This document shows, piece after piece, positions 5,993 to 47,818 of a DNA stretch of 50,848 bases. The notes under the pieces are model-generated. The model did no database searches. It saw nothing but the letters and a program-made list of their open reading frames with translations, and was not told the origin of the DNA. The translations under genes were made by a program, and so were the position numbers. The stretch is taken from assembly GCF_006345805.1 (NCBI RefSeq), contig NW_021834017.1, positions 1 through 50,848 of the forward strand, written 5' to 3'. Source of the stretch: Octopus sinensis (taxonomy: Eukaryota). Position 1 is the first letter of the stretch. Each line of letters starts with the position of its first letter.

Positions 5993-6992
<1,000 letters not shown>

Positions 6993-11171: not shown

Positions 11172-11512
11172 TGTATTTCTTTACAACCCACAAGGGGCTA
11201 AACACAGAGGGGACAAAGAAATAGAAATGAACTCTGAACAGCCCTCAGCTTGTTAGCACCTTTCTAACCATCCAAGCCATGCCAGCGTGTAAAATAGACA
11301 AAGGTGCTAACAAGCTGAGGGCTGTTCAGGGTTCATTTCTATTTCTTATTACCCACAAGGGGCTAAACACAGAGGGGACAAAGAAATAGAAATGAACTCT
11401 GAACAGCCCTCAGCTTGTTAGCACCTTTCTAACCATCCAAGCCATGCCAGCGTGTAAAATAGACAAAGGTGCTAACAAGCTGAGGGCTGTTCAGGGTTCA
11501 TTTCTATTTCTT
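11172..11512. repeat. Two tandem 165-bp units, each a SINE-A tail plus a 132-bp hairpin
   Basis: Hairpins 11216-11347 and 11381-11512; 48-bp arms with 1 mismatch and a 36-nt loop; the two hairpins look identical. Confidence 0.9.
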
Positions 11513-11899
11513 AATTACCGACAAGGGGCTAAACACAGAAGAGACAAACAAGGACGGACATAGGTATTAAGTCGATTATATCGACCCCAGTGCGTAACTG
11601 GTACTTAATTCATTGACCCCGAAAGGATAAAAGGCAAAGTCGACCTCGGCGGAATTTGAACTCACAACGTAACGGCAGCCGAAATACATATTTCTTTATT
11701 ACCCATAAGGGGCTAAACACATAGGGGACAAACAAGGACGGACAAAGGGATTAAGTCGATTACATCGACCTCAGTGCGTAACTGGTACTTATTTGATCGA
11801 CCCCGGAAGGATGAAAGGCAATGTCGACCTCGGCGGAATTTGAACTCTGAACGTAACGACAGCCGAAATTCCGACCGGCGTGCTAACGATTCTACCAGC
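11510..11899 (-). mobile_element. SINE family A, tandem dimer
   Basis: Copies at ~11510-11687 and 11688-11899, same architecture as 9255-9635. Confidence 0.88.
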
Positions 11900-12305
11900 C
11901 TTACGGGAATGAGATGTATCGACGCTGATATGCTTCGACCAATGGTTAACATTTCAAAGGTTTGCTGTTCCACACGAATTACTAGTTTGTCAACTGATAA
12001 ACATATTTACAAGTGTCCAGAAAGATAAGGGGTCTTTGATTGCGGCATTTTACTTCATTCTCAACTCCTTTTGATTTCGGTCGAGACGCATGTTCTAGCC
12101 TCTTGAATAGTTACTCAGACAGGAGACAAAAGATCAATCTAAAGCAATCTTCCTTTAAATAACGAACGAATATCTTTGTTTTACCGTTTAGTGATCGAGG
12201 TAAGAGCCGCGGGTTCGAGTTCCTATTCTTAGCTTATGAAAGAAATCACAGAGCGAGGGCAGCTAAGATTCAGAGTGGTCTCCCTTGTGCCGTTGTGTTT
12301 AAAAG

Positions 12306-12690
12306 TCCAACTATAATACAAAAAGCCGAAGTTGTCTCTGTGTGTGGCAGGTTTGGTAGCCTTCGATTAACACCATCTCCTCCGAGACCCTGCGGCGCAA
12401 GTTGACCAAAATTGAGAGTATGATAGAAGAAGGCTCGCTCTTCATTCCGTAGAAGAAAAAATTCAAATCGGATCAAGTTAACAATAAAAATTATTTACAT
12501 CAAAAAATGCTTTTTTCTATGAAAATCCCTATTTTTTACGATTTTTTCACTGCTGTGTCGCCACTTTTCGGTGTATTTCAACCAGAAAAATGTTCACTTA
12601 AAGAGAATAACAAGCTACATAATGCAAAATTTTTACTTTTCAAAAATCCAATTCTAAAGGGTCGAAACAAACCCGGGCAATAACTGCTAG
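12306..12690 (+). mobile_element. Non-autonomous Helitron
   Basis: Head AAAAGCCGAAGTTGTC...; 3' end AAACCCGGGCAATAACTG-CTAG|T, typical of Helitrons; 5' boundary approximate. Confidence 0.7.
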
Positions 12691-12870
12691 TATATATATA
12701 AAGCTGAAGTTGTCTGTGTGTGGTAGATTTGGTAGCCTTCAACTAACACTATCTCCTCCGAGACCCTGCGACGCAAGTTGACCAAAGTTGAGAGTATGAT
12801 AGAAGAAGGCTTTTTATTTTCGTTTTGTTTTTCAGAAATTAGAACAGATAAATTTGGTGGGTGGAGCATA
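12691..12870 (+). mobile_element. Second Helitron head abutting the first element's CTAG
   Basis: TATATATATAAAGCTGAAGTTGTCTGTGTGTG... is homologous to 12311-12440 and to a fragment at 49042-49125. Confidence 0.65.
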
Positions 12871-13147
12871 ATTTTGTACCTGGGAACGTAAGTACAAAAT
12901 ATGCCTATTTATGACAAAACATTCGACAATAAAACTTTTTAAAAGTGTTGGTTAATGTTTATATGTTGACACGGAACTGGAAATCAAAGAGAAAAAAAAG
13001 AAAAAGAAAAAATATTCAAATGGATGTAAAACAATGTGTAGGCAACGAATAGGGAACAAAATGCGTGCTACGCAACGGGAGGGTGGGGAGAGGACTTGGG
13101 AAAATTCACAAGATCCGAGTTTTTCCATCAACTTTTAGGAAAATGGG

Positions 13148-15462
13148 GGGATCTTTTCCGTTTACCGGCAGTTTTTTAAAATAATTTCCAACTAACTAAA
13201 CACTTTTAAACTTCGTATACTGGTAGAATGTGTTTATAAACCATCTTTTTCTCTTGGCTTTATTGAGAAAATTCTATAGTTTGTAAGATATTTGGGATCT
13301 TTTCGGTTTGAACGGCAGTTTTTTAAAATAATTTCCTCGTAACTAAACACTTTTAAACTTCGTATACTGGTAGAATGTGTTTATAAAACATCTTTTTCTC
13401 TTGGCTTTATTGAGAAAATTCTATGATTTGTAAGATATTTGGGTCTTTTCTGTTTGACCGGCAGTTTTTTAAAATAATTTCCAACTAACTAAACACTTTT
13501 AAACTTCGTATACTGGTAGAATGTGTTTATAAAACATCTTTTTCTCTTGGCTTTATTGAGAAAATTCTATGATTTGTAAGATATTTGGGTCTTTTCTGTT
13601 TGACCGGCAGTTTTTTTAAAATAATTTCCAACTAACTAAACACTTTTAAACTTCGTATACTGGTAGAATGTGTTTATAAAACATCTTTTTCTCTTGGCTT
13701 TATTGAGAAAATTCTATAGTATGTAAGATATTTGGGATCTTTTCCGTTTGACCGGCAGTTTTTTAAAATAATTTCCAACTAACTAAACACTTTTAAACTT
13801 CGTATACTGGTAGAATGTGTTTATAAAACATCTTTTTCTCTTGGCTTTATTGAGAAAATTCTATAGTTTGTAAGATATTTGGGTCTTTTCGGTTTGAACG
13901 GCAGTTTTTTAAAATAATTTCCACGTAACTAAACACTTTTAAAGTTCGTATACTGGTAGAATGTGTTTATAAAACATCTTTTTCTCTTGGCTTTATTGAG
14001 AAAATTCTATAATTTGTAAGACATTTGTTGTTTTTCTTTCTTCAATTTCCGCAATTTCAACCAATCAATGGACGTCTATTGAGGTAAAAAACATTGTAAC
14101 ATATTTCGTAATAAATATTGTAACATATTTCGTCTAAAATTTCCTGCATTTCGGCAATTTAACCAATCAATTACCTCCATTGACGTAAACAACATTCTGT
14201 GCATAATGAATATGTCCCTCGTTTAAGAAACAGATTGGGTTTATTTACATTTATGAAGAAAAAAGATACCCTTCCTCCACCCCAAACCCTAACCCTAACT
14301 CTAAATCTAAATCTAAAATAGATTGAAATGCAATAGATCGATACTAGGGTTATAATTATGGGTGACAACTTCATACGACACTGCTATAAAAAACTTAGCA
14401 TTTCAATCTATTTTAGATTTAGGGTTAGGGGTGGGGGGAAGGGTACCTTTTTTTCTTCACAAATGTAACTAAACCCAATCTGTTTCATAAAGAAGGGACA
14501 TATTCATTATGTACAGAATGTTATTTACCTAAATGGACGCCAGTGATTGGTTAAAATTGCCGAAATGCAAGAAATTAAAGACGAAATATCTTACAACCTA
14601 TAGAATTTTCTCAATAAAGCCAAGAGAAAAAGATGTTTTATAAACACATTCTACCAGTATACGAAGTTTAAAAGTGTTTAGTTACGTGGAAATTATTTTA
14701 AAAAACTGCCGTTCAAACCGAAAAGATCCCAAATATCTTACAAACTATAGAATTTTCTCAATAAAGCCAAGAGAAAAAGATGTTTTATAAACACATTCTA
14801 CCAGTATACGAAGTTTAAAAGTGTTTAGTTACGTGGAAATTATTTTAAAAAACTGCCGTTCAAACCGAAAAGATCCCAAATATCTTACAAACTATAGAAT
14901 TTTCTCAAGAAAGCCAAGAGAAAAAGATGTTTTATAAACACATTCTACCAGTATACGAAGTTTAAAAGTGTTTAGTTACGTGGAAATTATTTTAAAAAAC
15001 TGCCGTTCAAACCGAAAAGATCCCAAATATCTTACAAACTATAGAATTTTCTCAAGAAAGCCAAGAGAAAAAGATGTTTTATAAACACATTCTACCAGTA
15101 TACGAAGTTTAAAAGTGTTTAGTTACGTGGAAATTATTTTAAAAAACTGCCGTTCAACCGAAAAGATCCCAAATATCTTACAAACTATAGAATTTTCTCA
15201 AGAAAGCCCAGAGAAAAAGATGTTTTATAAACACATTCTACCAGTATACGAAGTTTAAAAGTGTTTAGTTACGTGGAAATTATTTTAAAAAACTGCCGTT
15301 CAAACCGAAAAGATCCCAAATATCTTACAAACTATAGAATTTTCTCAATAAAGCCAAGAGAAAATGGTGTTTTATAAACACATTCTACCAGTACAGGAAG
15401 TTTAAAACTTTTTAGTTACCTAGAAATTATGTTACAAAGTGCCGTTCAAAAGGAAAAGATCC
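13148..15462. repeat. ~2.3-kb palindrome (foldback element): two inverted arrays of 146-148-bp monomers
   Basis: Six monomers on + (13148-14025), six on - (14590-15462); the unique inner arms are also inverted (ends GATTGAAATGC ~14331 / GCATTTCAATC ~14398); ~66-bp spacer. Confidence 0.93.
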
Positions 15463-15483
15463 GATTCCGTGTAATTTCCATAG

Positions 15484-15640
15484 TGTGTGTGTGCCTGTTC
15501 TGTTTTTATCTACAAAATCCACTCACAATGCTTTGGTCGACCCGTGGAAGACACTTGCCCAATGTGTCAAGCAGTGGGAATGAACCCGGAACCATGTGAT
15601 TGGTAAGCAAGCTACTTACCACACAGCCACTCATGCGCCT
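15484..15640 (-). mobile_element. SINE family B head
   Basis: Reverse complement of GAGTGGCTGTGTGGTAAGTAGCTTGCTTACCAA...GGGTTCATTCCCACTG. Confidence 0.8.
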
Positions 15641-16603
15641 TTGGTGAAAGTTTCGTTAAAAAGTATGAACTTCTTGGAAGTTTTGAGGCAACAAAGTCGG
15701 TGGGGTATTAAACTGTAGGTATGCCTCTTGTTCAATAAACCTTAACGGTAACTTCCGTTGATTTTCCAAAGAATTAACGAAGTGAACTTTTAGATTAACC
15801 GTGCCCACCTCTGTATATATGTATAGGCTTGTATGGGTCCGTATGTATAATAAGTATGTATACGAGTGTCGTACGAGAAGGTACGAGACCTAATGATGTT
15901 TATTTTTGAACATAGTACCCCCTCGCCCATACATCCCAACCGTCGAAGCTGCAGTGGTTAATTCTATTGGTGGCGAACTTTGCACTCTTTTTAGTCTTCG
16001 ACAGCAGATGCTACGTCGTCGTTACTGCAATACTTGTTCTCGGGTAAGTGTTTTTAAATTCCAATGTTGGGCAGGGCCGTCGAGGCCCTAAGCTCTTAAA
16101 AGATTTGGGTATCTCCGTAAAAGATTATGTAATTCGAAATATTAAACGAATCTTTTCGGTTTGAATCGGAACAACATTTTCTATGAATTCCTATGATCTC
16201 CTAATATGCTATAAAATCCTTTTTCGAGTCCCGAAATCGGGGTGGGGTGAGGTGGAAACCTCAGAAATTTCACCCGCACCCCTATTAAGCTTTTCACCTG
16301 CACGATTTTCACAGAGGGAAAAAAACTCCAGCAAAATAATAACAACAAGAACAACAATAATAATAATGGAATTATTGTATACCGTGCTCAGGTGCACCAC
16401 AACTTGTCAAAACCAAAAACCATTATACATCATCATCATCTTTTAACATCTACTTTCCATGCTGGCATGGGTTGGATGGTTTGATAAAGGACTGTGTGTG
16501 TGTGTGTGTGAGCCTGTACATCTGAGAGAAAAGAAAATATTTGTCAACAGAAAAGTTTACAAATTTTGCATCAAAATAAGGGCGATCCTTCGGCATTTCT
16601 CTA

Positions 16604-16994: not shown

Positions 16995-17380
16995 CTAGCT
17001 GTATCGCCCGGCGTTGCTCAGGTTTGTAAGGGAAATAACTATAAAGCATTTTTAGAGAGTTATAGCCAAAAAATAGCAAAAAAATGGAAAAAAATGATGG
17101 TAAATATTTTTTTGAGAGTCAAAAAAGGATGGAGCTGCGTCCCCTAGACAATTTGTGGTTCGTGTTTCTGATTCTCAACCCCATGTCGAATTTATCGATT
17201 TTTTTCAGAACTGGGGAAACTTTTCAAAATTTTCGCTGCGTTAGTTTTGAATTATGACATTGGGCTATGTGTGTGTCAAGTTTCATCAGAATCGGTTGAA
17301 AGCCGTGGTCGGGGTGAGGGTACAAGCAAACAGACACACAGAAACACGCACAGACAAACTGCCGTTTATATATAGAGAGA
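16995..17380 (-). mobile_element. Full-length non-autonomous Helitron
   Basis: On minus: A|TCTCTCTATATATAAACGGCAG ... CCTGAGCAACGCCGGGCGATACAG-CTAG|T; has the TC start, GC-rich subterminal motif, CTAG end and A|T site. Confidence 0.85.
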
Positions 17381-23191: not shown

Positions 23192-23368
23192 ATTTTCTTA
23201 TTTTGTATTATGAATTTCAGGTAAAACATTTTACCTTCGCCCATATAATACAATAAATGAATTGCATTGCAATTCTTAGCATTTCTGGGTACTTTATTGG
23301 CAGTATATTGGATAAATGATATCCCATAGTGGGTTACACTCATAACCCCTATCTCACTCTGTACTATA

Positions 23369-23844
23369 TCTTTATATATAAAAGAGAGGTTGTGTGCTGT
23401 CTGTCTCCTATGATTTAGATTCCTAACTACTCCCACATTTTGCGGTGCAGTTTAACCAAAACCGGGTATCTTATAGTCGTGATTCATATCAAGCCCTTCT
23501 GGGTATTAGCACGCGTCTACGATTTAAAAAAAAATTTACCATCATTTTTTTCGCTATTATATAAGGGAAGTAACTCTCTAAAAATGTCTACGATGAGTCA
23601 ACGATTTAAAAAAAAAATTACCATCATTTTTTTTCCATTTTTAATGCATTTTTTTCGCTATTATATAAGGGAAGTAACTCTCTAAAAATGTCTACGATGA
23701 GTCAATGATTTAAAAAAAAATTTACCATCATTTTTTTTCCATTTTTAATGCATTTTTTGGCTATTTTATTGGCTATAACTCTCTAAAAATGCTTATATAG
23801 TTATTTCCCTTACAAACCCGAGCAACGCCAGGCGATACTGCTAG
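23369..23844 (+). mobile_element. Non-autonomous Helitron with internal tandem repeats
   Basis: A|TCTTTATATATAAAAGAG ... CCCGAGCAACGCCAGGCGATACTG-CTAG|T; internal repeats start GTCTACGAT. Confidence 0.85.
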
Positions 23845-27364: not shown

Positions 27365-28550
27365 AGTTACACATATTCCACGATGCACACATTCCACGAA
27401 GCACATATTCCACGAAGCACATTCTGCGATGAACATATTCCCTGATGCACATATTCCACAATACATATATTCCATGTTGCACATATTCCATGAAGTGCAT
27501 TCCACGATGCACATATTCCACAAAGCACATTCCCCGATGCACATATTCCACGATGCACATATTCCACGAAGCACATTCTGCGATGCATATATTCCACAAA
27601 GCACATTCCCCGATGCACATATTCCACGATGCACATATTCCACGAAGCACATTCTGTGATGCATATATTCCACAAAGCACATTCCCCGATGCACATATTC
27701 CACGATGCACATATTCCACGAAGCACATTCTGCGATGCATATATTCTACGAAGCACATTCTGTGATGCATATATTCCACGAAGCACATTCTGTGATGCAT
27801 ATATTCCACAAAGCACATTCCCCCCCCGATGCACATATTCCATGAAGCACATTCTGTGATGCATATATTCCACAAAGCACATTCCCCGATGCACATATTC
27901 CATGAAGCACATTCTGTGATGCATATATTCCACAAAGCACATTCCCCCGATGCACATATTCCACGAAGCACATTCTGTGATGCATATTTCCACAAAGCAC
28001 ATTCCCCCGATGCACATATTCCACGAAGTACATTCTGTGATGCATATATTCCACAAAGCACATTCCCCGATGCACATATTCCACGATGCACATATTCCAC
28101 GAAGCACATTCTGCGATGCATATATTCCACGAAGCACATTCCCCGATGCACATATTCCACGAAGTACATTCTGTGATGCATATATTCCACAAAGCACATT
28201 CCCCGATGCACATATTCCACAATACATATATTCCCTGATGCACATATTCCGCAATACATATATTCCACGTTGCACATATTCCACGAAGCGCATTCCACGA
28301 TGCACATATTCCACAAAGCACATTCCCTGATGCACATATTCCACAATACATATATTCCACGTTGCACATATTCCACGAAGCACATTCTGCGATGCACACA
28401 TTCTGCAATGCACATCTTCCATGAAGCGCATCCTACGATGCACATATTCCGCGTTGCACACATTCCACGTTACACATATTCCACGAAGCACATTCCACAA
28501 AGCACATTCTGTGTTGCACACATTCCACGAAGCACATTCCACGTTGCACA
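27365..28550. repeat. Minisatellite of 14/16-bp monomers with 30- and 60-bp higher-order units
   Basis: For example GCACATATTCCATGAA-GCACATTCTGTGAT-GCATATATTCCACAAA-GCACATTCCCCGAT, recurring at 27831 and 27891. Confidence 0.95.
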
Positions 28551-28685
28551 AATTATTCGACGATTCGTTTCACTATAGCAGCTAAATCCATTTGCATATC
28601 TTTTTGAATGTTCCTTATTATTATTATTCATATTTTGAATGTACATTTTTTTTGTTCACTTTGAAAATGTTTGTATTGTTGCATA

Positions 28686-28870: not shown

Positions 28871-29065
28871 CATGCTATCTCTGCCACATTCATGCTCTAC
28901 ACATGCCTTTCTCTCTAACGGGAAATAAATATCTCCTTAAAACTTCATGCATTTTTCCTCTTTTACATCCTGCATTATGCAATTATAACAACAAATTTTT
29001 ATCGTCAGAACTACTGACGATCGACACATCATAATATTGCATGCCTGATCAATTTCTACCATTAA

Positions 29066-31200
29066 AAACAAATTGGTTTGAAAATTTGATTTTTGGTGGA
29101 ATTCTCGTTTAAGAACCCCATATGACCCCTCATAACCTTTTTTAGCTTTTTGGAATTTAAAAATAAATTCAGCACATTTTCAGTGAAATATTCAAAAATA
29201 TAGTTTTTTAATTTTATATTTCAGCTTATGTAGAGAAACTAAGTTCCTTTTCTTGCTTGTATTTCAATATTTTTATCCCCATAAAAACATTTATGCTATT
29301 AAAACAAATTGGTTTGAAAATTTGATTTTTTGTGGAATTCTTGTTTAAGTACCCCATATGACCCCTCATAACCTTTTTTAACTTTTTGGAATTTAAAAAT
29401 AAATTCAGCACATTTTCAGTGAAATATTCAAAAATATAGTTTTTTAATTTTATATTTCAGCTTATGTAGAGAAACTAAGTTCCTTTTCTTGCTTGTATTT
29501 CAATATTTTTATCCCCATAAAAACATTATGCTATTAAAACAAATTGGTTTGAAAATTTGATTTTTGGTGGAATTCTGGTTTAAGAACCCCATATGACCCC
29601 TCATAACCTTTTCTAACTTTTTGGAATTTAAAAAAAAATTCAGCACATTCCAGTGAAATATTCAAAAATATAGTTTTTTAATTTTATATTTCAGCTTATG
29701 TAGAGAAACTAAGTTCCTTTTCTTGTTTGTATTTTCCAGTTGGTTCTAACATGTATTCATCATCATCATCATCATCGTTTAGCGTCCGCTTTCCATGCTA
29801 GCATGGGTTGGACGGTTCAACTGGGCTCTGGGAAGCCAGAAGGCTGCACCAGGCCCAGTCTGATCTGGCAATGTTCTACGGCTGGATGCCCTTCCTAACA
29901 CCAACCACTCCATGAGTGTAGTGGGTGCTTTTTACATGTCACCGGCACAGGTGCCAGGGGAGGCTGGCAAACGGCCACGATCGGATGGTGCTTTTTATGT
30001 GCCGTCCCCATAAAAACATTTATGCTATTAAAAAAAATTGGTTTGAAAATTTGATTTTTTGTGGAATTCTTGTTTAAGAACCCCATATAACCCCTCATAA
30101 CATTTTCTAACTTTTTGGAATTTAAAAAAAAATTCAGTACATTTTCAGTGAAATATTCAAAAATATAGTTTTTTAATTTTGTATTTCAGCTTATGTACAG
30201 AACTAAGTTCCTTTTCTTGCTTGTATTTCAATATTTTTATCCCCATAAAAACATTTATGCTATTAAAACAATTGGTTTGAAAATTTGATTTTTGGTGGAA
30301 TTCTCGTTTAAGAACCCCATATGACCCCTCATAACCTTTTTTAACATTTTGGAATTTAAACATAAATTCAGTACATTTCCAGTGAAATATTCAAAAATAT
30401 AGTTTTTTAATTCTGTATTTCAGCTTATGTACAGAAACTAAGTTCCTTTTCTTGCTTGTATTTCAATATTTTTATCCCCATAAAAGCATTTATGCTATTA
30501 AAAGAAATTGGTTTGAAAATTTGATTTTTGGTGGAATTCTGGTTTAAGAACCCCATATGACCCCTCATAACCTTTTCTAACTTTTTGGAATTTAAAAAAA
30601 AATTCAGTACATTTCAAGTGAAATATTCAAAAATATAGTTTTTTAATTTTATATTTCAGCTTATGTAGAGAAACTAAGTTCCTTTTCTTGTTTGTATTTC
30701 CCAGTTGGTTCTAACATGTATTCATCATCATCATCATCGTTTAGCGTCCGCTTTCCATGCTAGCATGGGTTGGACGGTTCAACTGGGGTCTGGGAAGCCA
30801 GAAGGCTGCACCAGACCCAGTCTGATCTGGCAATGTTTCTATGGCTGGATGCCCTTCCTAATGCCAACCACTCTGTGAGTGTAGTGGGTGCTTTTTACGT
30901 GTCACCGGCACAGGTGCCAGACGAGGCTGGCAAACGATCACAATCAGATGATGCTTTTTATGTGCCATCCCCATAAAAACATTTATGCTATTAAAAAAAA
31001 TTGGTTTGAAAATTTGATTTTTTGTGGAATTCTCGTTTAAGAACCCCATATAACCCCTCATAACCTTTTCTAACTTTTTGGAATTTAAAAAAAAATTCAG
31101 TACATTTTCAGTAAAATATTCAAAAATATAGTTTTTTAATTTTATATTTCAGCTTATGTAGAGAAACTAATTTCCTTTTCTTGCTTGTATTTCCCAGTTG
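29066..31200. repeat. ~235-bp satellite, 7 monomers, in a ~965-bp higher-order repeat containing a retroposon fragment
   Basis: AATTGGTTTGAAAATTTG at ~29070, 29306, 29541, 30037, 30270, 30506 and 31000; retroposon pieces (-) at 29757-30006 and 30721-30968. Confidence 0.9.
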
Positions 31201-32449
31201 GTTCTAACATGTATGGTTTTTCAATCATCACCTTCACAATCCGAATGATATTTGTAGAAAATTCCACTAAAGAAATATCCATTTTTCCAAAAGTTATGAG
31301 GAAATAAAGCCAACTGATGTGAATTTTCCAAAACTTTTCACTCCACCCTCGGAAAACTTTTTCACATCAAATTCCGATATATCCATTAATATCCATTTGT
31401 CAGAAAGTTATGAGTAAAGGAAGGTGTGTGATTTAAGGGAGATCTGCCTGTTGTTTCTAACACATCCCACAACCACCTTTCTTGTTTCTTCCTCATTCTA
31501 ACATGTATTCATGTTTTTCAATATTTTTGTCCCCATAAAAACATTTATGCTATTAAAAAAACTGGTTTGAAAATTTGATTTTTGGTGGAATTCTCGTTTA
31601 AGTACCCCATATAACCCCTCATAACCTTTTTACTTTTTAAATTTTAAAAAAATTCAGTACATTTTCAGTAAAATTCTAAAAAATAATATCTTTTATTTTT
31701 TTCTTTCAGAAACTAAGTTCTTTTCGTTGTTTGTATTTCCCAGTTGGTTTTTGAAACTTCCCATTGCATCAAGCCACAACTATAAGGTTTGTCCAAATAG
31801 AAGAGATTCTGTTGTAAATATTGGATTGTATAGTCATAAAAACACAAGATATATATATGAGGGAGATTTAGCTGTTGTGTCTTGCACATCACACAGACTT
31901 TCACAGAATTACATGTAGACATAGATTAAAGAACAAACAAAATGTGAAAACTATTCCTTATTTTAAGCATTAAAAATGTAAATTCAGGACTCTATCAATA
32001 TCTGTAACTTACTGCAAACTCATTAGGAGATGTGAGAGAGAGAGAGACAACCCAAAGCAAAACGACCAAGGAGCCGCCGGTTGCCGAAACAGACACTCCG
32101 AGGATTTTCACCAGAGCCCCGTCTGCCGGGTTGTGGGCCTAATACCACTCGGTGTCAGACCAAACTGCCTTGGGTGGCCCTACCAGGAACCAAAGTTCCC
32201 GACAGCATAGCTCTGACACTACCCGTTGCCAGTGTCCCCACCACGGTGAGGAGGGGATGGACTTCGGGGACGCATGATTTTTGAATGCAACATGAGTTAT
32301 GGTGCTTGAGTGCATTGAACTAGAATGAGGGTTGTCATTCAAAAGTCCAAGAAAAAAACAAAGTTTGTAAATGCGAGGAAATACCATGGAGTTTCAGGGA
32401 ACCTGACATGATCTGTAACTGTTGGATTTTCAGAAAAACTATACAAGAA

Positions 32450-33156: not shown

Positions 33157-33202
33157 ATGGCTAAATGGATCTTGTTCTGCTATTTGTTTGTAACATTTGA
33201 CC
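33157..33202 (+). CDS. Coding exon 1: signal peptide
   Basis: ttttttcag-atc-ATG, MAKWILFCYLFVTFD+C|gtaagt. Confidence 0.75.
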
Positions 33203-36200
33203 GTAAGTTTTATTTATATTTTATTTAATTTCTTTCCATAACTTATTTTTGTTAAGGCAAACTTACTCAGGTGCACAGGGGTCTGGAATGGGGTCACTCA
33301 CATAAGGAGGATTTTCTTTGTTTTGGTAGGGATTTTCCCAATTTTGTTTTCATCACAGCTTTAGAAATGATGCATTTTATGGAAGAAAATTTGGTCCAGT
33401 GGTTAGGGCAGCGGACTCGCGGTTTCGATTCCCAGACCGGGCGTTGTGAGTGTTTATTGAGCGAAAACACCTAAAGCTCCACGAGGCTCCGGCAGGGGAT
33501 GGTGGTGATCCCTGCTGTACTCTTTCACCACAACTTTCTCTCACTCTTACTTCCTGTTTCTGTTGTACCTGTATTTCAAAGGGCCGGCCTTGTCACTCTC
33601 TGTGTCACGCTGAATATCCCCAAGAACTACGTTAAGGGTACACGTGTCTGTGGAGTGCTCAGCCACTTACACGTTTATTGAGCGAAAACACCTAAAAGCT
33701 CCACGAGGCTCCGGCAGGGGATGGTGGTGATCCCTGCTGTACTCTTTCACCACAACTTTCTCTCACTCTTACTTCCTGTTTCTGTTGTACCTGTATTTCA
33801 AAGGGCCGGCCTTGTCACTCTCTGTGTCACGCTGAATATCCCCGAGAACTACGTTAAGGGTACACGTGTCTGTGGAGTGCTCAGCCACTTACACGTTAAT
33901 TTCACGAGCAGGCTGTTCCGTTGATTCGGATCAACCGGAACCCTCATCGTCGTAACCGACGGAGTGCTTCCATCCATCCACCGTCTTATTTCTGGAGTGC
34001 AGTCACCATCTCGATTTCTTTTGGAGCCAAGGAAGATGAAATCATCAACCACTTCAATCTCTTCATTATCGATCTTGATGCTGGTGTTTGTTGTGGCTGC
34101 TGTTGACATGATCTTCGTTTTCTTAACCACAACCCGTCACTATTTAATAAATTCTCAGATGTCTTTACTTTAACAGCTTCGTTTCCCTCTGTGTCTGCTG
34201 TAGTGTTTCCTGGTTTATCGAAATACGTGGGAATTTCATTTATGTATCCAATATTTCCTGGGGAGAACCCAAACATTTTACACTCCTTCAGAACAAATTT
34301 TTTCAGTTTCTGAGCAATATGAGTTTTTTTTTTGGCAGTCGCAGTCACTTATCAATACATGTCAGCCTCAACATCCAAAGCCCTCATGTTCCACCATTTT
34401 GTCCTGCACCTTTCAGGGTCCACCTCTTCCACAGATTGCCTCCGCAGTTAGAGATCAGCACTTCTTTACATAGCAGTCCTTGTCCGTTCATTTTTAGAAT
34501 GACATTGTAAGACAGGTGTAAAAGGATGACCCATTACCAGTTTAAACATGAAACAGGTAGAATCTTTGTGCCAGGTATGGCTACTTTAACTCGTTAGCAA
34601 TTAGTTTATTCCGTTTAATGTAATGCTCCTTTAGACTTGGTTTTTGAATTAATCATTCGTTATCTTGTAGTTTTGACATTTTGATGATGTGATTGTTTAT
34701 TTTTAGACTGACATTGTAGGGTAGGTGTGAGGGGCTGGACCCAGCCACTTAGAACATAAAACAGATATGGCTGCTTTAATCCTTTAGCAATCAAATTACT
34801 GTGAAATGTAATGTTCATTTATTCACATTGTTTTGAATTATTTCATCTTAAAATCAAAAAATTTTGTTTTCATCTTTTACAGATTTGTCAAGGGCACAAA
34901 AGTATAATATCACCCAAAGTGGTAAATATATTCTTCTTTCCTACATTTGACCCTCCAACATGGAGTATAGGCCACTCATAATTGAATTCCATGTTGCATA
35001 ATTTTTCACCTCTGTACTTATACTCTGCCATGAATGTCCCCCTTTCTCTAGTTCCTTTTGTGTTGATCTACGCCACTAGTTCTTAGGCCTACCTCTCTTT
35101 CTATATCCAAGTTAAGCTAAGTTAAGGTAAGTTAAGTTAATTTTTGGGCTCAAAAAGCAAAAAAGCAAGGCCATGTAGGGGGACATGGAGTTATGTACAG
35201 GGTGGTGTTCATGCAAAGAGTTCAGGCCATTTGTGGTCAAGGGAGACTTTGAACCAAGCAGTCGTCAGCATCTTCACTATCTCGTCCGGCAGCTTATTCC
35301 ACGGATCCGCAACCCGGACGGAGAAGGCCCCTCTTCTTCGATTGAGATGAAATTGTCGCAGATAGAGTGCATTCCACTCTGCGCTTTGCTCTACAATGAT
35401 ACAAAGAGTGGCGGTTTGATCTCCACATGAACGGTTCTTCCTAAATCCAGCTTCTTCTTTACTGCTGTCCTCATCATCTCTAAAAGTATCCTGTTAAAAT
35501 CTTTTCCGGGAGCTGATAATAGCCTAATCCCTCTATAAGATGCTGAGTACTCATCAGCCAATTATAGAGGTTTTCCATTAATAAAAAAGTTATCAAATCA
35601 AGTGGCAACATTATAGAGAAGGTAGATATATAGACAAAGATGTGGATTTAAATTTTAAGAACATATGAGGTACTAAGATTTGGTTGTTCCACTACATCAT
35701 ACGTTCTTAAAATTAAAATCCACATCTTTGTCTATATATCTACCTTCTCTATAATGTTGCCACGTGATATGAACATTTTTGTATTAACAGAAAACCTCTA
35801 TAATTGGCTGATGAGTGTTCAGCATTTTAAAACTGTTGTAATACTTACAACATTTAATAAAATGATGTAGTACGAAACGATCGTACCAAATTACCGGAGT
35901 CATTCTTATTGCTTATTTTCATTATAATCACCCCACGGATTTCTATGGATAACACCATACAAAATTCTGGTGCATCTAAATTAAGTACCATATTCATTTG
36001 AATCTAAATTTTTGCTGAACTTATATATATATATATTTGCCAACATAATGTGGCAGTCTTGGTTAGGACGAATGATACTGTAAATTTAGTCTTAGGAAAC
36101 ATCATCTATCTGCATACCAATGGTCTCTGGGTTATTTCCCTTCATCAGCACAGAATAACTGCTCGGCTACAGATGACTCCACTAAACTCTTGTCCAAAAT

Positions 36201-39200
36201 ATATACTTTCCAAAGTGACACAAAGTCTCTGATCTAACAAATAGAAAATTATTTCTAAATCTCTGAACAAAAGACATTGAGTAACAGTACTCTAGGGTAG
36301 AGATTATTTGCCAACATAATGTGGCAGTCCTGGTTAGGACGATTGTTACTGTTCCTTAGCCCTAGGAAATATCGTCTCCAGCAGGCTATATGACACACTA
36401 GCTGCATCCTTATATTTTCAAACAAGGGAGTTTAGCATCCCATAGGACATAGATAGCGTGTCATATACCCAGCTGGAGGCAGTGTTTCCTAGGGCTAGAT
36501 AACAGTAACAATCATCCTAACTAGGACTGCCATATTATGCTGGCAAATAATCCTTACTCTCGAGTAATGTTACTGAATGTTTCTCATTCAGGGACTTAGA
36601 AATAATAATTTTCTATTTACATATATATATATATACATATATATAAACAATGGGCTTCTTTCAGTTTCCATCTATCAAATCCACTCACAAGGCTTTGAAA
36701 CACACAAGTTTGTATGTATATATATACACACACAAGTGTGTATGTATATATATACACACACATATACATACACACACATATACATACAATGGGCTTCTTT
36801 CAATTTCCATCTAGAAAATCCACTCACAAGGCTGATGCTGTAGTAGAAGACACTTTCCCGAGGTGCTCTGCAGTGGGACTGAACCCAGGACCATGTGATT
36901 TGGAAGCAAACTTCTTAACTGATTTCGTTATTTCAGGAATTGCTGTGCTCAATGGATGTCTCACCCTTACGATAACAATACCTGATATGAAACGACCGGT
37001 GGTTTGGAAGTGCCGCAATTATAAATATGAATGTGACAAGACATGCGCTGATGGCCCTGACTATAAAGTGACACAGGATGGAGATACCTCCACGCTTTGG
37101 ATCAAAAAAGTAACTGAGAAATGTTTGACTTGGAGATTTGATGATGACAACCTTAATGCTGCAGACATTGATTTGAAGATAAAGAGTAAGGAAATGATTT
37201 ATAATAATTTCTTTATTGACCACAGAGGGCTAACACAAAGGAAAACATTCGGGAGGGTCTAGTGTGGGTTTTAGCATGTAAAAAGTCATACAAAGAATAA
37301 AAGAAATTCAAAGTAACATCCCTGATAGTTTGGGGACTTTGAAGGGCCACACGTAAAGAAAGCCCACAAAATCCAAGGTCTCCCTGGCCACCAGGGTTGA
37401 TGCCCTCTCCCAGTCTTTCCTCTCCAATATACAGGTACACTCTGAGAGAAGGCCCATTCACTCAGGTAATGCTCACCCCTCTCACCCACCTTTCAACAAA
37501 CTGCTTGGAAGCCAGCACTTACCTCTCCACCCTGATTTTCCTCTTCAAGTAAAACCTGAAAAAGTTTATTAGGGTTTTGACAAAATGGCAGTTGCTGGTC
37601 TTCAGCCCTTTCAGACATGTCCACTGTATGATCCCCTTTGCCATGGGCCCCGAGCAGATAAAAACTGGTTGCCCTTCCTGGTTGAGGGAAAGTAGAGGGG
37701 CCATCTTCACAATGGACTTCCAAAATTTTCCAAAATCAAAATTTTTGTTTTCATCTTTTACAGGTTTCTCAAGTGCAAACATTTACAAGATCACCCAAAG
37801 TGGTAAATATATTCTTGTTTCCTACATTTGACCCTCCAACGTGGAGTATAGGCCACTCATAATTGAATTCCATGTTGCATAATATTTCGCCTCTGTACTT
37901 ATACTCTGCCATGAATGTCCTCCTTTCTCTAGTTCCTTTTGTGTTGATCTACGCCACGGAGTTCTTAGGCCTACCTTTCTTTTTACATCCAACCGGTTCC
38001 ACTTTAAACACTTTTTGCTACATTTAGTGTGTCTTTTCTAATTGTGCTACCAATCCACTTCCTCCTTTTCTTAAATATTTGCTCCCTAATCAAAACTTGA
38101 TTTGTTCATTGCCATAGCTCCATATTGCTTATGTGTTTGGGCCATCTAATTTTAAGTATACTACGCAAGCATCTGTTGATGAATGGTTTTATTTGCTTAT
38201 TTGATTTAACTGTTGTTTGCCATGTCTCAGCCCCATACAATAACACCGCTTTTACGTTCGTGTTAAAAATTTTAACTTAAGTTAAGATAATTTTTGGGCT
38301 CAAAAAGCAAAAAAGCAAGGCCATGTAGGGGGACTTGGAGTTATGTACAGGGTGGTGTTCATGCAAAGAGTTCAGGCCATTTGTGGACAAGGGAGACTTT
38401 GAACCGAGCGGTCGTCGGCATCTTCATTATCTCGTCCGGCAGCTTATTCCACGGAACCGCAACCCGGATGGAGAAGGGCCCTCTCCTTCGATTGAGATGA
38501 AATCGTCACAGATAGAGCTTTTCGGAGTGACCCCGCAGCCGACGCTCTGGAGCAGGAGTGAAGAACATCTCTTCCGAGAGGTTACTTTGTTGTTTATTGA
38601 AATTACACTTGCGCTCCATACTTTCTTTAACAGGTGAAAAACGGTCCTTGCCTTACTTATTCTCACCTTAATATCTTCGTCGGTGCCACCTGAAAACGTT
38701 ATCTTACTACCTGAATACATAAATTGGCTACATCCTCTTGTTCACCAGTTTCTAGTTTAATACATTCATTGTTTACTTCATTAACGTGCATAATTTTTGA
38801 TTTGAGGTTGACTTTCAATCCTAGTTTGGCAGCTATTGCTTCTAATTTTGACATTTTATTTTGCATTTGGCTATGTTTGTGAAAGCAGCCCCCTATCATC
38901 TGCAAAGTCGAGATCTTCTACAGCTTCCACATCCGTCCATTCAATGCTTGTTTGGCTTTCAATCGTAGTTTCCTTCATAATCCAATCTATAACTAATAGA
39001 AATAAAAAGGGTGTAAGGATACAGCCCTGTCGAACTCCTGTTTTTACTTCAAATTTATCTGTAGCTCCGTTTCCATGCAAGACTCGGCATGACATTCCTT
39101 GGTATGTTGGTCTTATATATATATATGTATATCATCATCATCATCATCATCATCGTTTAACGTCCGCTTTCCGCGCTAGCACGGGTTGGACGGTTTGACC

Positions 39201-40461
39201 GGGTCTGGGAAGCCAGGGGCCGCACCAGGCTCCAGTCTGATCTGGCAGAGTTTCTACGGCTGGATGCCCTTCCTAACGCCAACCACTCCGTGAGTGGATT
39301 GGGTGCTTTTTACGTGACACCTGCACAGGGGCCGGAGGGTCCGGCATCGGTCACGATCGGTTCGAGCATTTTAACGTGTCAGCGGCACGGGGGCAACGAG
39401 GTCCGGGGTACTTTGGGGATCGGGGTACTTTGGGGATCCAGGGTACTTTGGGGGTCCGGGGTACTTAGAATGGGTAGGGGGTATGTGGAATTGCTGCAGA
39501 AAGCAGCCCGGGTCTTTGTAGTCACAGCATTTATCGTCACTGAGTAACGTAATTAGGTAGAGGAAAGAAATACAGATATTCTAGAGTTGAGTTGGGGAGG
39601 GGGGGTCCAGTTGAGGCGGGTAATATAGGGGAGCAACCAGTGGGGAAGGTTGGGGTAAGGAGGAACGATGGCAGGAAGGGGTTGGTGAAGGTTCCTAAGA
39701 AATAAAAACGTAGGATATTGAAATAAAAACGTAGGATATTACGAGGCGGGAGGGTACTAAAGGGGGTGGTCGGAATGAGGCAGTGTCAGGAGGAAGCGTA
39801 AGATCGGTGGGCAGTTGATGAGCTATGCGCTAGCAGCTTCTCTTTTCACAGTGAAAGCATATGAGGAGAAGGGGTAGTGGGTGGAGGGGGAGGGAGTAGG
39901 GCGTACCCGGTGTAGATGAGTAAGGCGTATCCGGTGTAGATGGTGAGAACAGGGTATACTGGTATTGGTGGTGGGGGGTGAGAACAGTGTTCACCGGTAT
40001 TGGTGGTGGTGGTGGTGAGAACAGAGTTCACCGGTATTGGGGGTGGGGGGCGGGCGCATGGCGGAAAGATGGGAAGAGATGGGATTACGGCTTGAGGTAG
40101 CCTAAGGTTAAATTTTGTAGAGAGAGAGATAGGAAAGATAAATCAAGTTATGGCGAAGGCTTGAAAGTAGCCTAAAAGGTAAATTTTTTCGTAACAATGT
40201 ATGAATAAACGTAGTAACAACGAATAAAAATAGTAAGATAAATTTTTAAGAACTTGCTGCGGGCATCGATCGAGAGTTGAAATTGAAGAAGAAAGTAAGT
40301 TGAATTGGGAATTTAAATTGCAGATATATACACACACACATACACACATACACACATACATATAAATATATATATACACACACACATACATACAATAGGC
40401 TTCTTTTAGTTTCCATCTATCAAATCCACTCACAAGTCTTTGAAATACACAAGTGTGTATG

Positions 40462-40493
<32 letters not shown>

Positions 40494-42433
40494 TATACAT
40501 ACACATGCACACATACACACACACACACATACATAGAATGGGCTTCTTTCAATTTCCATCTTGAAAATCCACTCACAAGGCTGATGCTGTAGTAGAAGAC
40601 ACTTTCCTGAGGTGCTGTGTAGTGGGACTGAACCCAGGACCATGTGATTTGGAAGCAAACTTCTTAACTGATTTCTTTATTTCAGGAATTGCTGTGCTCA
40701 ATAGAAACCTCACCCTTTCGATAACAATACCGAACATGAAACGACCGGTGGTTGGAAGTGCCAGAATTATAAATATGAATGTGACAAGACATGCGCTGAT
40801 GGCCCTGACTATAAAGTGACACAGGATGGAGATACCTCCAAGCTTTGGATCAAAAAAGTAACTGAGAAATGTTCGACTTGGAAATTTGATGATGACAACC
40901 TTAATATTGGAAGAATTGATTTGGAGATAAAGAGTAAGGAAATGATTTATAATAATTTCTTTATTGACCACAGAGGGCTAACACAAAGGAAAACATTCGG
41001 GAGGGTCCAGCGTGGGTTTTAGCATGTAAAAAGTCATACAAAGAATAAAAGAAAGTCAAAGTAACATCCCTGATAGTTTGGGGACTTTGAAGGGCCACAC
41101 GTAAAGAAAGCCCACAAAATCCAATGTCTCCCTGACCACCAGGGTGGATGCCCTCTCCCGGTCTTTCCTCTCCAATATACAGGTACACTCTGAGAGAAGG
41201 CCCATTCACTCAGGTAATGCTCACCTCTCTCACCCACCTTTCAACAAACTGCTTGGAAGCCAGCACTTACCTCTCCACCCTGATTTTCCTCTTCAAGTGA
41301 AACCTGAAAAAGTTTATTAGGGTTTGACAAAATGGCAGTTGCTGGTCTTCAGCCCTTTCAGACATGTCCACTATATGATCCCTTTTGCCATGGGCCCCGA
41401 GCAGATAAAAACTGGTTGCCCTTCCTGGTTGAAGGAAAGTAGAGGGGCCATCTTCACAATGGACTCAGCTGATAGTTGTATATAATAAGGGTTTCTTTTA
41501 TTTGCCACAAGGGCAAAGGATGAGGGGGTCAATACCAAGGTGTGTGTGTGTGGAGGTTATATTATCTTTCTCTTTTTACTTGTTTCAGTCATTTGACTGT
41601 GGCCATGCTGGAGCACCGCCTTTAGTCGAGCAAATCAACCCCAGGATTTATTCTTTGTACTTATTCTATGAGTTCTCTTTTGCCGAACCACTAAGTAACG
41701 GGGATGTAGACAAACCAGCAACGGTTGTCAAGCGATGTTGGAGGACAAACAGACACACAAACACACACATATATACGACGGGCTTCTTTCAGTTTCCATC
41801 TACCAAATTGGTTCTCTTGCTGAACCGCTAAGTAACGGGGACGTAGACACCCCAGCATCGGTTGTCAAGCAATGCTAGGGGGACAAACAGACACACAAAC
41901 ACACACATATATACGACGGGCTTCTTTCAGTTTCCATCTACCAAATTGGTTCTCCTGCTGAACCGCTAAGTAACGGGAATGTAGACACCCCAGCATCGGT
42001 TGTCAAGCAATGCTAGGGGGACAAACAGACACACAAACACACACATATATACGACGGGCTTCTTTCAGTTTCCGTCTACCAAATCCACTCACAAGGCTTT
42101 ATATAACCAAGCTCATGTGTGCAACATAGTGTTACTGGAAATTTTGATGGGGACTTTTCCTTTAGATCACTTTGAAATGGAATTTGTATAACAGAAATGA
42201 AAGTATTTTTTAATAGTTTAGTATGAAAATGGTCAAACTTGGGAGATATTACTATTTTTTATTAAAAAAAAAGGTATATATTTTATTGTTTGTCAATTGC
42301 AGATCCGAAACCTAAACCTCATGGACTAACTACACTTGAGATTGTCGGAATCATTTTTGGCTCACTGATCCTTGCTGCAATCCTTGTTGGACTCGCTTAT
42401 TTCGGCTACAAATATTTTAAAAATAACCATTAG
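33157..42433 (+). CDS. Six-exon type I membrane protein: signal peptide, two divergent Ig-like domains, TM, short tail. ~250 aa if the exon 5 frameshift is repaired; 154 aa if exons 4-5 are skipped
   Basis: All five introns are GT-AG and phase 1. Exons 33157-33202, 34883-34921, 36937-37185, 37764-37802, 40686-40933, 42303-42433. AATAAA at 42601 and 42774. The Ig call is inferred from the motif pattern. Confidence 0.8.
33392..33975 (+). mobile_element. tRNA-derived SINE family C with internal ~222-bp tandem duplication (intron 1)
   Basis: GGTCCAGTGGTTAGGGCAGCGGACTCGCGGTTTCGATTCCC head; GTTTATTGAGCGAAAACACC at ~33452 and ~33673. Confidence 0.88.
33985..34140 (-). pseudogene. RTE-clade LINE ORF2 fragment
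   Basis: KKTKIMST...IKIDNEEIEVVDDFIFLGSK..DGDCTPEIRR is the RTE/BovB-like post-RT region. Confidence 0.8.
34145..34320 (-). pseudogene. pogo/Tigger-like DDE transposase fragment
   Basis: IGYINEIPTYFDKPGNTTADTEGNEAVKVKTS resembles the pogo motif IGNMDETPVYFDMP..TT...G...V.V.T. Confidence 0.65.
34883..34921 (+). CDS. Coding exon 2: 39-nt micro-exon with signal cleavage region
   Basis: ttttacag|(H)LSRAQKYNITQS(G)|gtaaat; phase 1-1; N-I-T sequon. Confidence 0.8.
35109..35375 (-). mobile_element. CR1-like LINE 3' end with (TTAAC)n tail; duplicated at 38276-38570
   Basis: HLNRRRGAFSVRVADPWNKLPDEIVKM...FKVSLDHKWPELFA* matches the CR1 ORF2 C-terminus. Confidence 0.8.
35380..35539 (-). pseudogene. 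RTE-clade RT fragment
   Basis: SYRGIRLLSAPGKDFNRILLEMM resembles NYRGITLLSVPGKVFNRIIL. Confidence 0.75.
35540..35825. mobile_element. Intronic hairpin MITE, ~130-bp arms
   Basis: ATGCTGAGTACTCATCAGCCAATTATAGAGG / CCTCTATAATTGGCTGATGAGTGTTCAGCAT, with a long near-perfect inner stem. Confidence 0.85.
36301..36552. mobile_element. Intronic hairpin MITE; partial left-arm copy at ~36033-36110
   Basis: GATTATTTGCCAACATAATGTGGCAGTCC / GGACTGCCATATTATGCTGGCAAATAATC. Confidence 0.82.
36937..37185 (+). CDS. Coding exon 3: Ig-like domain 1
   Basis: ttatttcag|GIAVLNGCLTLTITIPDMKRPVVWKCRNYKYECDKTCADGPDYKVTQDGDTSTLWIKKVTEKCLTWRFDDDNLNAADIDLKIK|gtaagg; 249 nt, phase 1-1. Confidence 0.85.
37400..37718 (-). 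pseudogene. Probable L1/Tx1-like LINE ORF2 C-terminal fragment; duplicated at ~41150-41465
   Basis: ...MAKGIIQWTCLKGLKT...LINFFRFYLKRKIRVER...FVERW recalls LINE C-termini; recognised from memory only. Confidence 0.45.
37764..37802 (+). CDS. Coding exon 4: 39-nt linker micro-exon, paralogue of exon 2
   Basis: ttttacag|(S)FSSANIYKITQS(G)|gtaaat. Confidence 0.8.
38571..39105 (-). pseudogene. RTE-clade reverse transcriptase fragment
   Basis: FEVKTGVRQGCILTPFLFLLVIDWIM...DLDFADD...LGLKVN..KSKIM...YSGS...DIKVRISKAR; contains stops and frameshifts. Confidence 0.9.
39123..39390 (-). mobile_element. (GAT)n-tailed retroposon
   Basis: (CAT)n-CGTTTAACGTCCGC...GGATGCCCTTCCTAACGCCAACC. Confidence 0.85.
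39400..40110 (+). repeat. G-rich segment with short tandem repeats
   Basis: GGGGTACTTTGGGGAT-like x4 (~39405-39465); AAATAAAAACGTAGGATATT x2; ACCGGTATTGGTGGTGG-like x3; many G3-G7 runs. Confidence 0.75.
40686..40933 (+). CDS. Coding exon 5: Ig-like domain 2, with a 1-nt deletion at ~40752 in this assembly
   Basis: 248 nt against 249 nt for exon 3; GGTTGG against GGTTTGG; splice sites intact. Confidence 0.75.
41570..42098 (-). mobile_element. SINE family B with three tandem ~138-bp internal copies
   Basis: GAACC(A/G)CTAAGTAACG at ~41685, 41822 and 41960. Confidence 0.85.
42303..42433 (+). CDS. Coding exon 6: Pro-rich stalk, TM helix, short cytoplasmic tail, stop
   Basis: caattgcag|(N)PKPKPHGLTTLE-IVGIIFGSLILAAILVGLAYFGY-KYFKNNH*; positive-inside Lys residues follow the TM. 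Confidence 0.85.
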
Positions 42434-47164: not shown

Positions 47165-47818
47165 AGCAGTGGTAAAATGGTTGGGGTCTCATATAAAAGG
47201 GTCTGGAAGAAATATTACCATGGATAATTGGTTTACAAGTTATGGATTTAGAGTTAATCTCTTGGAGAAATATAGATTAACATTTGTTGACCCTTTCAGA
47301 AAGAACAAGATAGAACTTCCCCCTCAGTTTGTTGCCACAAGAGGCAGAACTGAATATACAAGCTTGTTTGGTTTCCAGAAGGATGTTACACTGACCCCAT
47401 ATGTTCCCACGAAAAGTAAAAATGTCGTCCTATGGAGTACAATGCATCATGATGCTGCAATTGATGTAAGTACGAAAGAAAAAAGAAAACCAGAGATTAG
47501 AACCTTCTACAACATTACTAAAGGAAGGGTAGGCCCCGTGGTGGATCAATTGTGTTCCATGTACGATGTTTCCAGAAATACTCGATGTTGGCCACTTACA
47601 GTTTTCTTCACCATACTCAATGTTGCAGGAATAAATGTATACAATATGTTCATGGCAAACCCTCAAACAGCTATCAGGGTCTGAAAGTTTCTGAGGGAAT
47701 CGGGACTGAAGTTGGTGGAGGACCAAATTCATCATTGCAAGACAAAACCCATCCATATTTGAGGAAAGACATGGAAAATAAGATTCGACATTTCTCAGCA
47801 TCTAAAGAATTACCTCCA

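Follow-up and report, generated by a model that had tools for sequence, protein, structure and literature searches.

Gene conversion takes part in the evolution of several families of animal receptors. In the major histocompatibility complex (MHC), class I and II genes combine diverse peptide-binding exons with homogenised flanking introns, and their alleles are patchworks produced by micro-conversion. Clustered protocadherins and the vertebrate immunoglobulin (Ig)-like receptor clusters (KIR, LILR and CEACAM) evolve by tandem duplication and gene conversion, and the molluscan FREPs of Biomphalaria are Ig superfamily-containing proteins that are diversified by point mutation and conversion. 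To our knowledge, no diversified recognition receptors are known in cephalopods. Here, we present the analysis of a 50,848-nt stretch of Octopus sinensis DNA (NW_021834017.1, hereafter the window), which corresponds to the unplaced 50.8-kb contig VCDQ01005272.1 of assembly GCA_006345805.1 and carries the uncharacterized gene LOC115230624 with two duplicated domain exons, exons 3 and 5. The two exons differ more from each other than their flanking introns do, and most of this excess lies in two short patches that recur in the exons of paralogous modules, including those of the sister species O. vulgaris. We consider it most probable, at roughly 70%, that these exons belong to tandem Ig modules with homogenised introns, in which gene conversion has assembled the exons as mosaics of older patches.

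Exon and intron divergence in two duplicated modules

The translated exons of the window gave a 100% match in a protein search to XP_036355629.1 (P0001), the 168-aa "uncharacterized protein LOC115230624 [Octopus sinensis]", the gene of which is annotated at 33157-40819 of the contig. Domain exon 3 (36937..37185, plus strand, 249 nt, phase 1-1) encodes 82 residues of an Ig-like domain, D1, and domain exon 5 (40686..40933, plus strand, 248 nt) encodes the Ig-like domain D2, which is frameshifted here. Each domain exon is preceded by a micro-exon of 39 nt on the plus strand, likewise of phase 1-1: micro-exon 2 (34883..34921, LSRAQKYNITQSG) provides the first strand of domain 1, and micro-exon 4 (37764..37802, FSSANIYKITQSG) represents a second, older micro-exon type. 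The first part of module 1 (34850..35367, plus strand) pairs in self-BLAST with 37732-38517 at 92-94% identity, apart from 280 nt inserted in copy 2. The second part (36615..37718, plus strand) pairs in self-BLAST and global alignment with 40360-41465 at 93.4% over 1109 nt, and this pairing takes in the microsatellite and the short interspersed element (SINE)-like sequence directly 5′ of the acceptor site.

Global alignment and direct counts returned the numbers that the initial annotation of this locus had obtained by hand: 20 substitutions separating exons 3 and 5; a single codon changed only synonymously (CCT/CCG) and 12 amino-acid differences, if the missing base of exon 5 is ignored, with the replacements at NGC/NRN, T/S, PD/PN, CR/CQ, T/K, L/S, R/K, AAD/IGR and K/E; eight differing sites over the initial 300 nt of the introns downstream of the two exons; and 9 of 39 nt between micro-exons 2 and 4, the coordinates of which were corrected to those given above. 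The exon pair had been taken as 249 nt long, which is right for exon 3, but exon 5 has 248 nt because of a 1-nt deletion that had been overlooked. The claim that the exons diverge more than the introns was borne out, with 20/248 differences in the domain exon (8.1%) versus 19/679 in the flanking introns (2.8%; Fisher p = 0.0012), and the excess in the micro-exon was also significant (9/39 versus 13/217 flanking sites, p = 0.002).

The second part of that claim, that the exons differ almost only by amino-acid change, describes no more than the neutral expectation. According to the Nei-Gojobori method, exons 3 and 5 show 3.7 synonymous differences (Sd) over 48.8 sites and 16.3 non-synonymous differences (Nd) over 194.2 sites, giving a synonymous divergence (dS) of 0.079, a non-synonymous divergence (dN) of 0.089 and a dN/dS ratio (omega) of 1.13 (p = 1.0); since ~80% of the sites are non-synonymous, the replacement bias is no evidence beyond neutrality. 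Both rates are raised relative to the introns: dN is 3.1 times the intron divergence (p = 0.0014) and dS 2.8 times. Compared with the O. bimaculoides orthologue, the two exons have a dN/dS of 0.37-0.39 at a dS of ~0.5.

The differences are clustered at exon positions 18-50 and 222-240. Fifteen of the 20 fall inside two hyper-divergent patches totalling 52 nt, one at the 5′ side (36954..36986, plus strand), where exons 3 and 5 differ at 8 of 33 nt, and one at the 3′ side (37158..37176, plus strand), with 7 differences in 19 nt (NAAD..K versus NIGR..E), while the other 197 nt differ at 2.5%, the rate of the introns. To follow the patches through other modules, we denote the O. vulgaris domain exons as Ov1a, Ov1b, Ov2, Ov3a and Ov3b, the O. 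vulgaris micro-exons with the prefix Ov_m, and D1 and D2 of the window as wD1 and wD2. In the 5′ patch, the exon 5 version is identical to Ov1a, Ov2 and Ov3a at sites 18-33, and its CCGAAC motif is identical to Ov3b. In the 3′ patch, the exon 3 version (AAD), GCTGCAGAC, equals Ov3a and Ov3b, and the exon 5 version, ATTGGAAGA...GAG, equals Ov2. Both states of 18 of the 20 differing sites occur, at the nucleotide level, in other domain exons of O. vulgaris or O. bimaculoides, and by our own reading of the site tables the exon 5 states are common to Ov2 at 16 of the 20. At the protein level, the "NGC" variant occurs in O. sinensis as well as in O. vulgaris. The D1/D2 differences, including all 12 replaced codons, fall at the variable positions of the family (mean entropy 1.19 versus 0.33 bits). 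The sharing of patches together with their confinement to 52 nt indicates that the exon excess does not stem from new mutations.

The exons are mosaic in structure. Triplet runs tests detected block-wise alternating affinity of wD2 to wD1 and Ov2 (p = 0.010), of wD2 to wD1 and Ov1b (p = 0.0003) and of wD1 to wD2 and Ov1a (p < 0.0001), and 43 of 120 informative site pairs failed the four-gamete test. By its flanking sites, wD1 pairs with Ov1a and Ov3a, from which it differs at 0/145 upstream sites; the partner of wD2 is Ov1b. Micro-exon 2 is identical (0/39) to Ov_m1a and Ov_m2. Micro-exon 4 differs at 9/39 sites from every type-2 micro-exon, with flanks only 3-9% divergent, and it also differs at 9/39 sites from Ov_m1b, which occupies the same position in O. 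vulgaris, at a flank divergence of 3.2%; its type is found in the proteins P0005 and P0043 as well, and a similar form exists in O. bimaculoides. When the exon 3/5 differences were polarised with O. bimaculoides, seven changes fell on D1 and ten on D2, and at three sites all three sequences differ; a further 40 sites are common to D1 and D2 against O. bimaculoides. The mean dS among modules is 0.08, far below the 0.4-0.6 to O. bimaculoides. From the 40 shared sites and the low dS between modules it follows that great age is confined to the patches, the larger part of each exon being young or homogenised. For the same reasons, a model of ancient exon lineages whose introns were completely homogenised is only partly tenable.

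The excess of exon over intron divergence extends beyond the window. Our nucleotide set comprised seven modules from O. sinensis and O. vulgaris and one from O. bimaculoides, and in all 21 pairs of the former, which are not independent of each other, the exons were more divergent than the introns (4.8-14.9% versus 1.5-4.8%; Fisher p 0.015 to 3e-11). The means over the 21 pairs were 0.080 for dS, 0.123 for dN and 0.035 for intron divergence. In every pair dN exceeded intron divergence (ratio 2.2-7.2, p 0.019 to 8e-11), and dS was significantly above it in 5 of the 21 (mean 2.3 times intron divergence), although this intron yardstick presumes one history for exon and intron, which mosaicism violates. 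The dN/dS ratio was above 1 in 18 of the 21 pairs, in only two of them significantly, without correction. Among the 82 codons of the seven exons, 34 show amino-acid variation and 3 synonymous variation only. In comparison with O. bimaculoides, the exons (19-22%) are not more divergent than the intron (~26%) and dN/dS amounts to 0.22-0.49, suggesting that these exons are not intrinsically fast over the long term.

The loci of the related species also bear on the age of the arrangement. In O. vulgaris, locus L003 contains one two-domain copy and one one-domain copy and locus L004 a further two-domain copy, so that the two-module architecture is older than the divergence of O. sinensis from O. 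vulgaris. At the O. bimaculoides locus L002 there are two alternative pairs of leader and micro-exon, one domain exon and a hydrophobic tail exon. There, the duplicated unit (11431-16128) is the leader plus micro-exon, yielding alternative first exons (X1/X2 versus X3), and in O. sinensis and O. vulgaris it is the micro-exon plus domain exon; both types of duplication begin ~25 nt 5′ of the micro-exon.

Conversion, selection and artefact as explanations

In the explanation that we favour, exons 3 and 5, each with its own micro-exon, would be two adjacent modules of a tandem array, and one module would encode one V/I-like Ig domain. As all exons are of phase 1-1, modules could be duplicated, lost or skipped with the reading frame kept. 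The product would be a type I membrane protein consisting of a signal peptide, D1, D2 and a transmembrane tail, encoded in an array that adjoins a histone gene cluster within a region that is itself repeated. Modules and introns are ~95-98% alike across copies, even between O. sinensis and O. vulgaris (introns ~97%), a likeness that would result from recent duplication, unequal crossing-over or gene conversion, i.e., concerted evolution. The domain exons and micro-exons would be mosaics drawn from a limited set of older variant patches, which are common to paralogous modules in both species and would be moved between modules by short-tract conversion. The excess between exons 3 and 5 would then represent old variation imported or retained in short patches and not a burst of substitutions after the duplication. 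Gene conversion from paralogues, or conversion homogenising the introns, had been named as an alternative in the initial annotation, and in view of the patches, the shared variants and the mosaic tests it is the better explanation.

Several points weigh against this explanation. The TGT (Cys) codon of exon 3 had no nucleotide-level match among the exons fetched, and a PHI (pairwise homoplasy index)-like permutation on the 16 informative exon sites was not significant (p = 0.8). No donor locus was identified in O. sinensis, the shared patches being matched in exons of the sister species, and some of the shared states might be mimicked by repeated mutation of a few hypervariable sites. The family-wide figures come from pairs that overlap in their modules. 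Moreover, conversion alone does not account for the greater diversity of exons than introns throughout the family, for which selection for diversity or a conversion limited to exons is needed. Selection for diverse residues is backed by a dN above intron divergence everywhere and by an omega mostly above 1, and exon-only conversion from distant donors is backed by the raised dS; we lean towards the former at about even odds. Selection maintaining the diversity is thus plausible, and that the diversity is kept because diverse surface residues are useful is, in our estimate, a coin toss.

The initial annotation had preferred a different reading, namely that diversifying positive selection, of the type known from immune, allorecognition or gamete-recognition receptors, fixed new point mutations in the two exons once a recent tandem duplication had taken place, and it had made this depend beforehand on a dN/dS above 1 and on a pattern not explained by conversion tracts. 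The 3.1-fold excess of dN over intron divergence in the exon 3/5 pair (p = 0.0014), the position of 12 of 12 replaced codons at family-variable sites, the V/I-like Ig fold and the three sites at which D1, D2 and O. bimaculoides all differ would suit such selection. However, dN/dS between exons 3 and 5 is 1.13 (p = 1), dS is raised too, to 2.8 times the intron value, 18 of the 20 variant states are not new but occur as whole identical patches in other exons, those of the sister species included, the exon beyond the two patches diverges at the intron rate, and long-term dN/dS is as low as 0.22-0.49. With 15 of the 20 differences in 52 nt, exchanged patches account for the pattern, so that selection on new mutations after the duplication fails on dN/dS and on conversion tracts alike; it is largely refuted by these criteria, and we consider it improbable. 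Somewhat better placed, though still unlikely, is neutral ectopic conversion restricted to exons, in which distant paralogues that are alignable in their exons only would pass divergent patches into exons and never into introns. Such a process would produce the mosaic structure and the shared patches, the raised exon dS (on average 2.3 times intron divergence) and a dN/dS significantly above 1 in just 2 of 21 pairs, and the family is large, with more distant members. Its imports should, however, carry the long-term mixture of non-synonymous and synonymous changes (omega ~0.4), whereas omega exceeds 1 in 18 of 21 pairs and, in the seven exons, 34 codons vary in amino acid against 3 that vary synonymously alone; furthermore, the patches that we see come from modules the introns of which are also ~97% alike.

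There is, finally, a very small chance that the pattern has no biological meaning and arose by artefact or decay, on a mis-assembled or haplotig contig with exon 5 as a freely drifting, frameshifted pseudo-exon. The window is indeed an unplaced 50.8-kb scaffold, its coding exons are identical in protein to those of the chromosomal locus LOC115225116, and a T run in exon 5 has lost 1 nt. Yet neutral decay cannot outpace introns, and the exon rate is 2.9 times higher; the changes are found on both exons, both exon sequences are annotated intact on the chromosome, and the same exon-over-intron pattern appears in the independent O. vulgaris assembly. Pseudogene drift of exon 5 as the source of the excess is excluded by the exon rate above that of the introns, the changes on both exons and the intact chromosomal copy.

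Gene model, protein family and genomic neighbourhood

Further exons complete the gene model in the window. The leader exon (33157..33202, plus strand), located by tblastn of P0001, encodes a predicted signal peptide, MAKWILFCYLFVTFD, plus the first base of a His codon; this start of LOC115230624 is consistent with the annotated gene range, and an identical leader occurs in isoforms X5 and X6 of LOC115225116. A terminal exon (42303..42433, plus strand, phase 1) was read from the sequence and would encode a transmembrane segment and a short, presumably cytoplasmic, tail, (N)PKPKPHGLTTLEIVGIIFGSLILAAILVGLAYFGYKYFKNNH*. It is missing from the RefSeq model of the contig, lies downstream of exon 5 in a compatible phase, and its product is identical to the C-terminus of LOC115225116 isoforms, as confirmed by P0005 and P0046; the exon is 97.6% identical to positions 23290-23415 of O. 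vulgaris L003. A probe made from the O. bimaculoides tail exon had no match in the window. The 1-nt deletion in exon 5 (TT at 40752-40753 versus TTT at 37003-37005 in exon 3) causes a frameshift leading to a premature TGA at 40817-40819, which is where the RefSeq protein ends ("...RPVVGSARIINMNVTRHALMALTIK"). As a point for annotation, the RefSeq model of the contig is therefore shortened by a 1-nt deletion and lacks the transmembrane exon.

The chromosomal counterpart, LOC115225116, is located on a 21.3-Mb O. sinensis scaffold and has eight annotated isoforms. Its D1 is 100% identical to the exon 3 protein, and isoforms X5 and X6 possess the exact leader of the window, micro-exon 2, D1, micro-exon 4, an intact D2 (RPVVWKCQ) and the same transmembrane tail. 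On this sequence identity, the contig appears to be a redundant copy, either a haplotig or a very recent duplicate, of the 3′ part of LOC115225116. Exon 5 being intact there, the deletion is specific to the contig and likely reflects either an error of the assembly or, on a haplotig, a null allele. D1 is followed directly by D2 in isoforms X1-X7 and left out of X8 (cassette skipping), all of these being RefSeq predictions, and the 380-400-kb models may be chimeric. Mutually exclusive, Dscam-like splicing of exons 3 and 5 is rejected on the tandem D1 and D2 of the predicted isoforms X1-X7. Isoform X4 has a different hydrophobic tail, resembling the tail of O. bimaculoides. LOC115225115 (at least 18 isoforms) and LOC115225116 (8) each extend over ~380-400 kb on opposite strands, overlap each other and span several histone repeats; both models may be joins of exons from separate repeat copies.

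The introns contain additional elements. In intron 4 (38300-40300), copy 2 has ~1.8 kb without counterpart in copy 1, which probably consists of transposable-element insertions; a (CAT)n run at 39130 and a G-rich segment containing short tandem motifs (39380-40050) belong to it. The SINE-like element (36793-36920 and 40542-40669, and 17154-17310 in O. bimaculoides L002) ends ~17 nt 5′ of every domain-exon acceptor. Its position is conserved in O. bimaculoides, where it is ~10% divergent versus ~30% for the downstream intron, and it may contribute a branch site or polypyrimidine tract or be under constraint.

A HMMER scan of 1.84 billion representatives recovered a family of 32 clusters, several of which have 2-5 domain repeats. 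The named members all belong to Octopus, save one weaker match in Haliotis, and every member is labelled "uncharacterized" or "hypothetical"; searching the literature by topic and by LOC identifiers returned nothing on the family. The AlphaFold2 model of the domain is all-beta with eight strands (pLDDT 93.8, pTM 0.85), and its best matches in the PDB, all of the V-type or I-set of Ig domains, are nanobodies, CTLA-4, vNAR and obscurin Ig32 (TM-score 0.66-0.71, E ~1e-3), which identifies the modelled domain as a V/I-like Ig fold. With the module as query, Pfam yielded nothing above the cut-off (best matches Sgo0707_N2, E = 0.066, and Ig_5, E = 0.094), and some longer family members have a precomputed PF07679 match. 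In an alignment of 41 unique single-domain modules, the C-strand tryptophan W36 is invariant and four cysteines are conserved (C38, C45, C49 and C75 of the 95-residue module). The B strand (LTLTIT) is devoid of a conserved cysteine, so that, judging from alignment and model, the disulfide pattern is probably not the canonical B-to-F. On the secondary structure of the model, the variable residues precede strand B, occupy the BC and CC′ turns and strands E and F, and also lie at the FG/G junction. The protein may be a recognition or adhesion receptor.

The window also contains three histone genes: an open reading frame (ORF) for a core histone fold, of the H2A/H2B type according to Pfam (1669-2070, plus strand), histone H4 (5993-6305, minus strand) and histone H3 (6582-6992, plus strand). 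H3 and H4 both match the O. bimaculoides proteins at 100% identity, in the case of H4 over residues 22-104. The Ig-like genes adjoin histone clusters in all three octopus species, within a larger repeated unit, which has a period of ~67 kb in O. vulgaris L003. A 147-bp satellite forms two inverted arrays (13148-14027 and 14584-15462) of six copies each with 95-97% matches, and in O. vulgaris L003 an array of ~9 kb at 38.2-47.4 kb. The regions 27370-28554 and 29052-31214 consist of a 30/76-bp minisatellite, with long spurious minus-strand ORFs, and an adjoining 236-bp tandem repeat, both of which also exist in O. vulgaris L003. The ORF at 47169-47684 corresponds to the C-terminal portion of a piggyBac-type DDE transposase (PF13843, E = 2.5e-14).

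Comparison with known diversity receptors

The octopus family combines hallmarks of diversity receptors: a V/I-like Ig fold in the model, phase-1 exons that are both modular and mosaic, numerous annotated isoforms and an amino-acid diversity several-fold above the neutral intron divergence in each pair compared. Taken together, these features permit a tentative and rather speculative proposal, in which this would be an undescribed, lineage-restricted family of octopus membrane receptors built from V/I-like Ig modules with selected hypervariable surface residues. Its library of patches would be recombined by germline conversion, changes in module number and alternative splicing, making it a candidate recognition system (immune, self/non-self or gamete) within histone-cluster repeats that may drive the exchange.

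With the MHC, the octopus modules share an exon diversity above that of the flanking introns, short shared patches in varied combinations, a raised synonymous divergence of the exons and an Ig-related fold. They differ from it in that the units are paralogous tandem modules and sister-species orthologues instead of alleles, in that the variants shared by O. sinensis and O. vulgaris are found in paralogues, and in that dN/dS is not significantly above 1. Arthropod Dscam1 likewise has tandem-duplicated exons for parts of Ig domains, many annotated isoforms and a surface receptor as its product, as predicted here; in contrast to the mutually exclusive exons of Dscam1, which encode one domain, octopus exons 3 and 5 occur in the same predicted isoforms and supply consecutive domains. 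Like the protocadherin, KIR, LILR and CEACAM clusters, the octopus genes form tandem arrays in which most of the sequence evolves in concert and certain segments of the ectodomain keep diversity; the octopus array is set apart from these clusters by a different, undescribed domain family, by a module made of micro-exon plus domain exon and by its placement in a histone-cluster repeat. With the FREPs, the octopus proteins share a molluscan origin, Ig-like domains and diversity of a mosaic kind; unlike the FREPs, they have no fibrinogen domain, and the evidence presented here is all germline. If selection is not confirmed, the locus is a clean caution that gene conversion can make duplicated exons outrun their introns and mimic positive selection. 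If selection for diversity holds, the family would be a new invertebrate example beside Dscam, FREPs and VCBPs.

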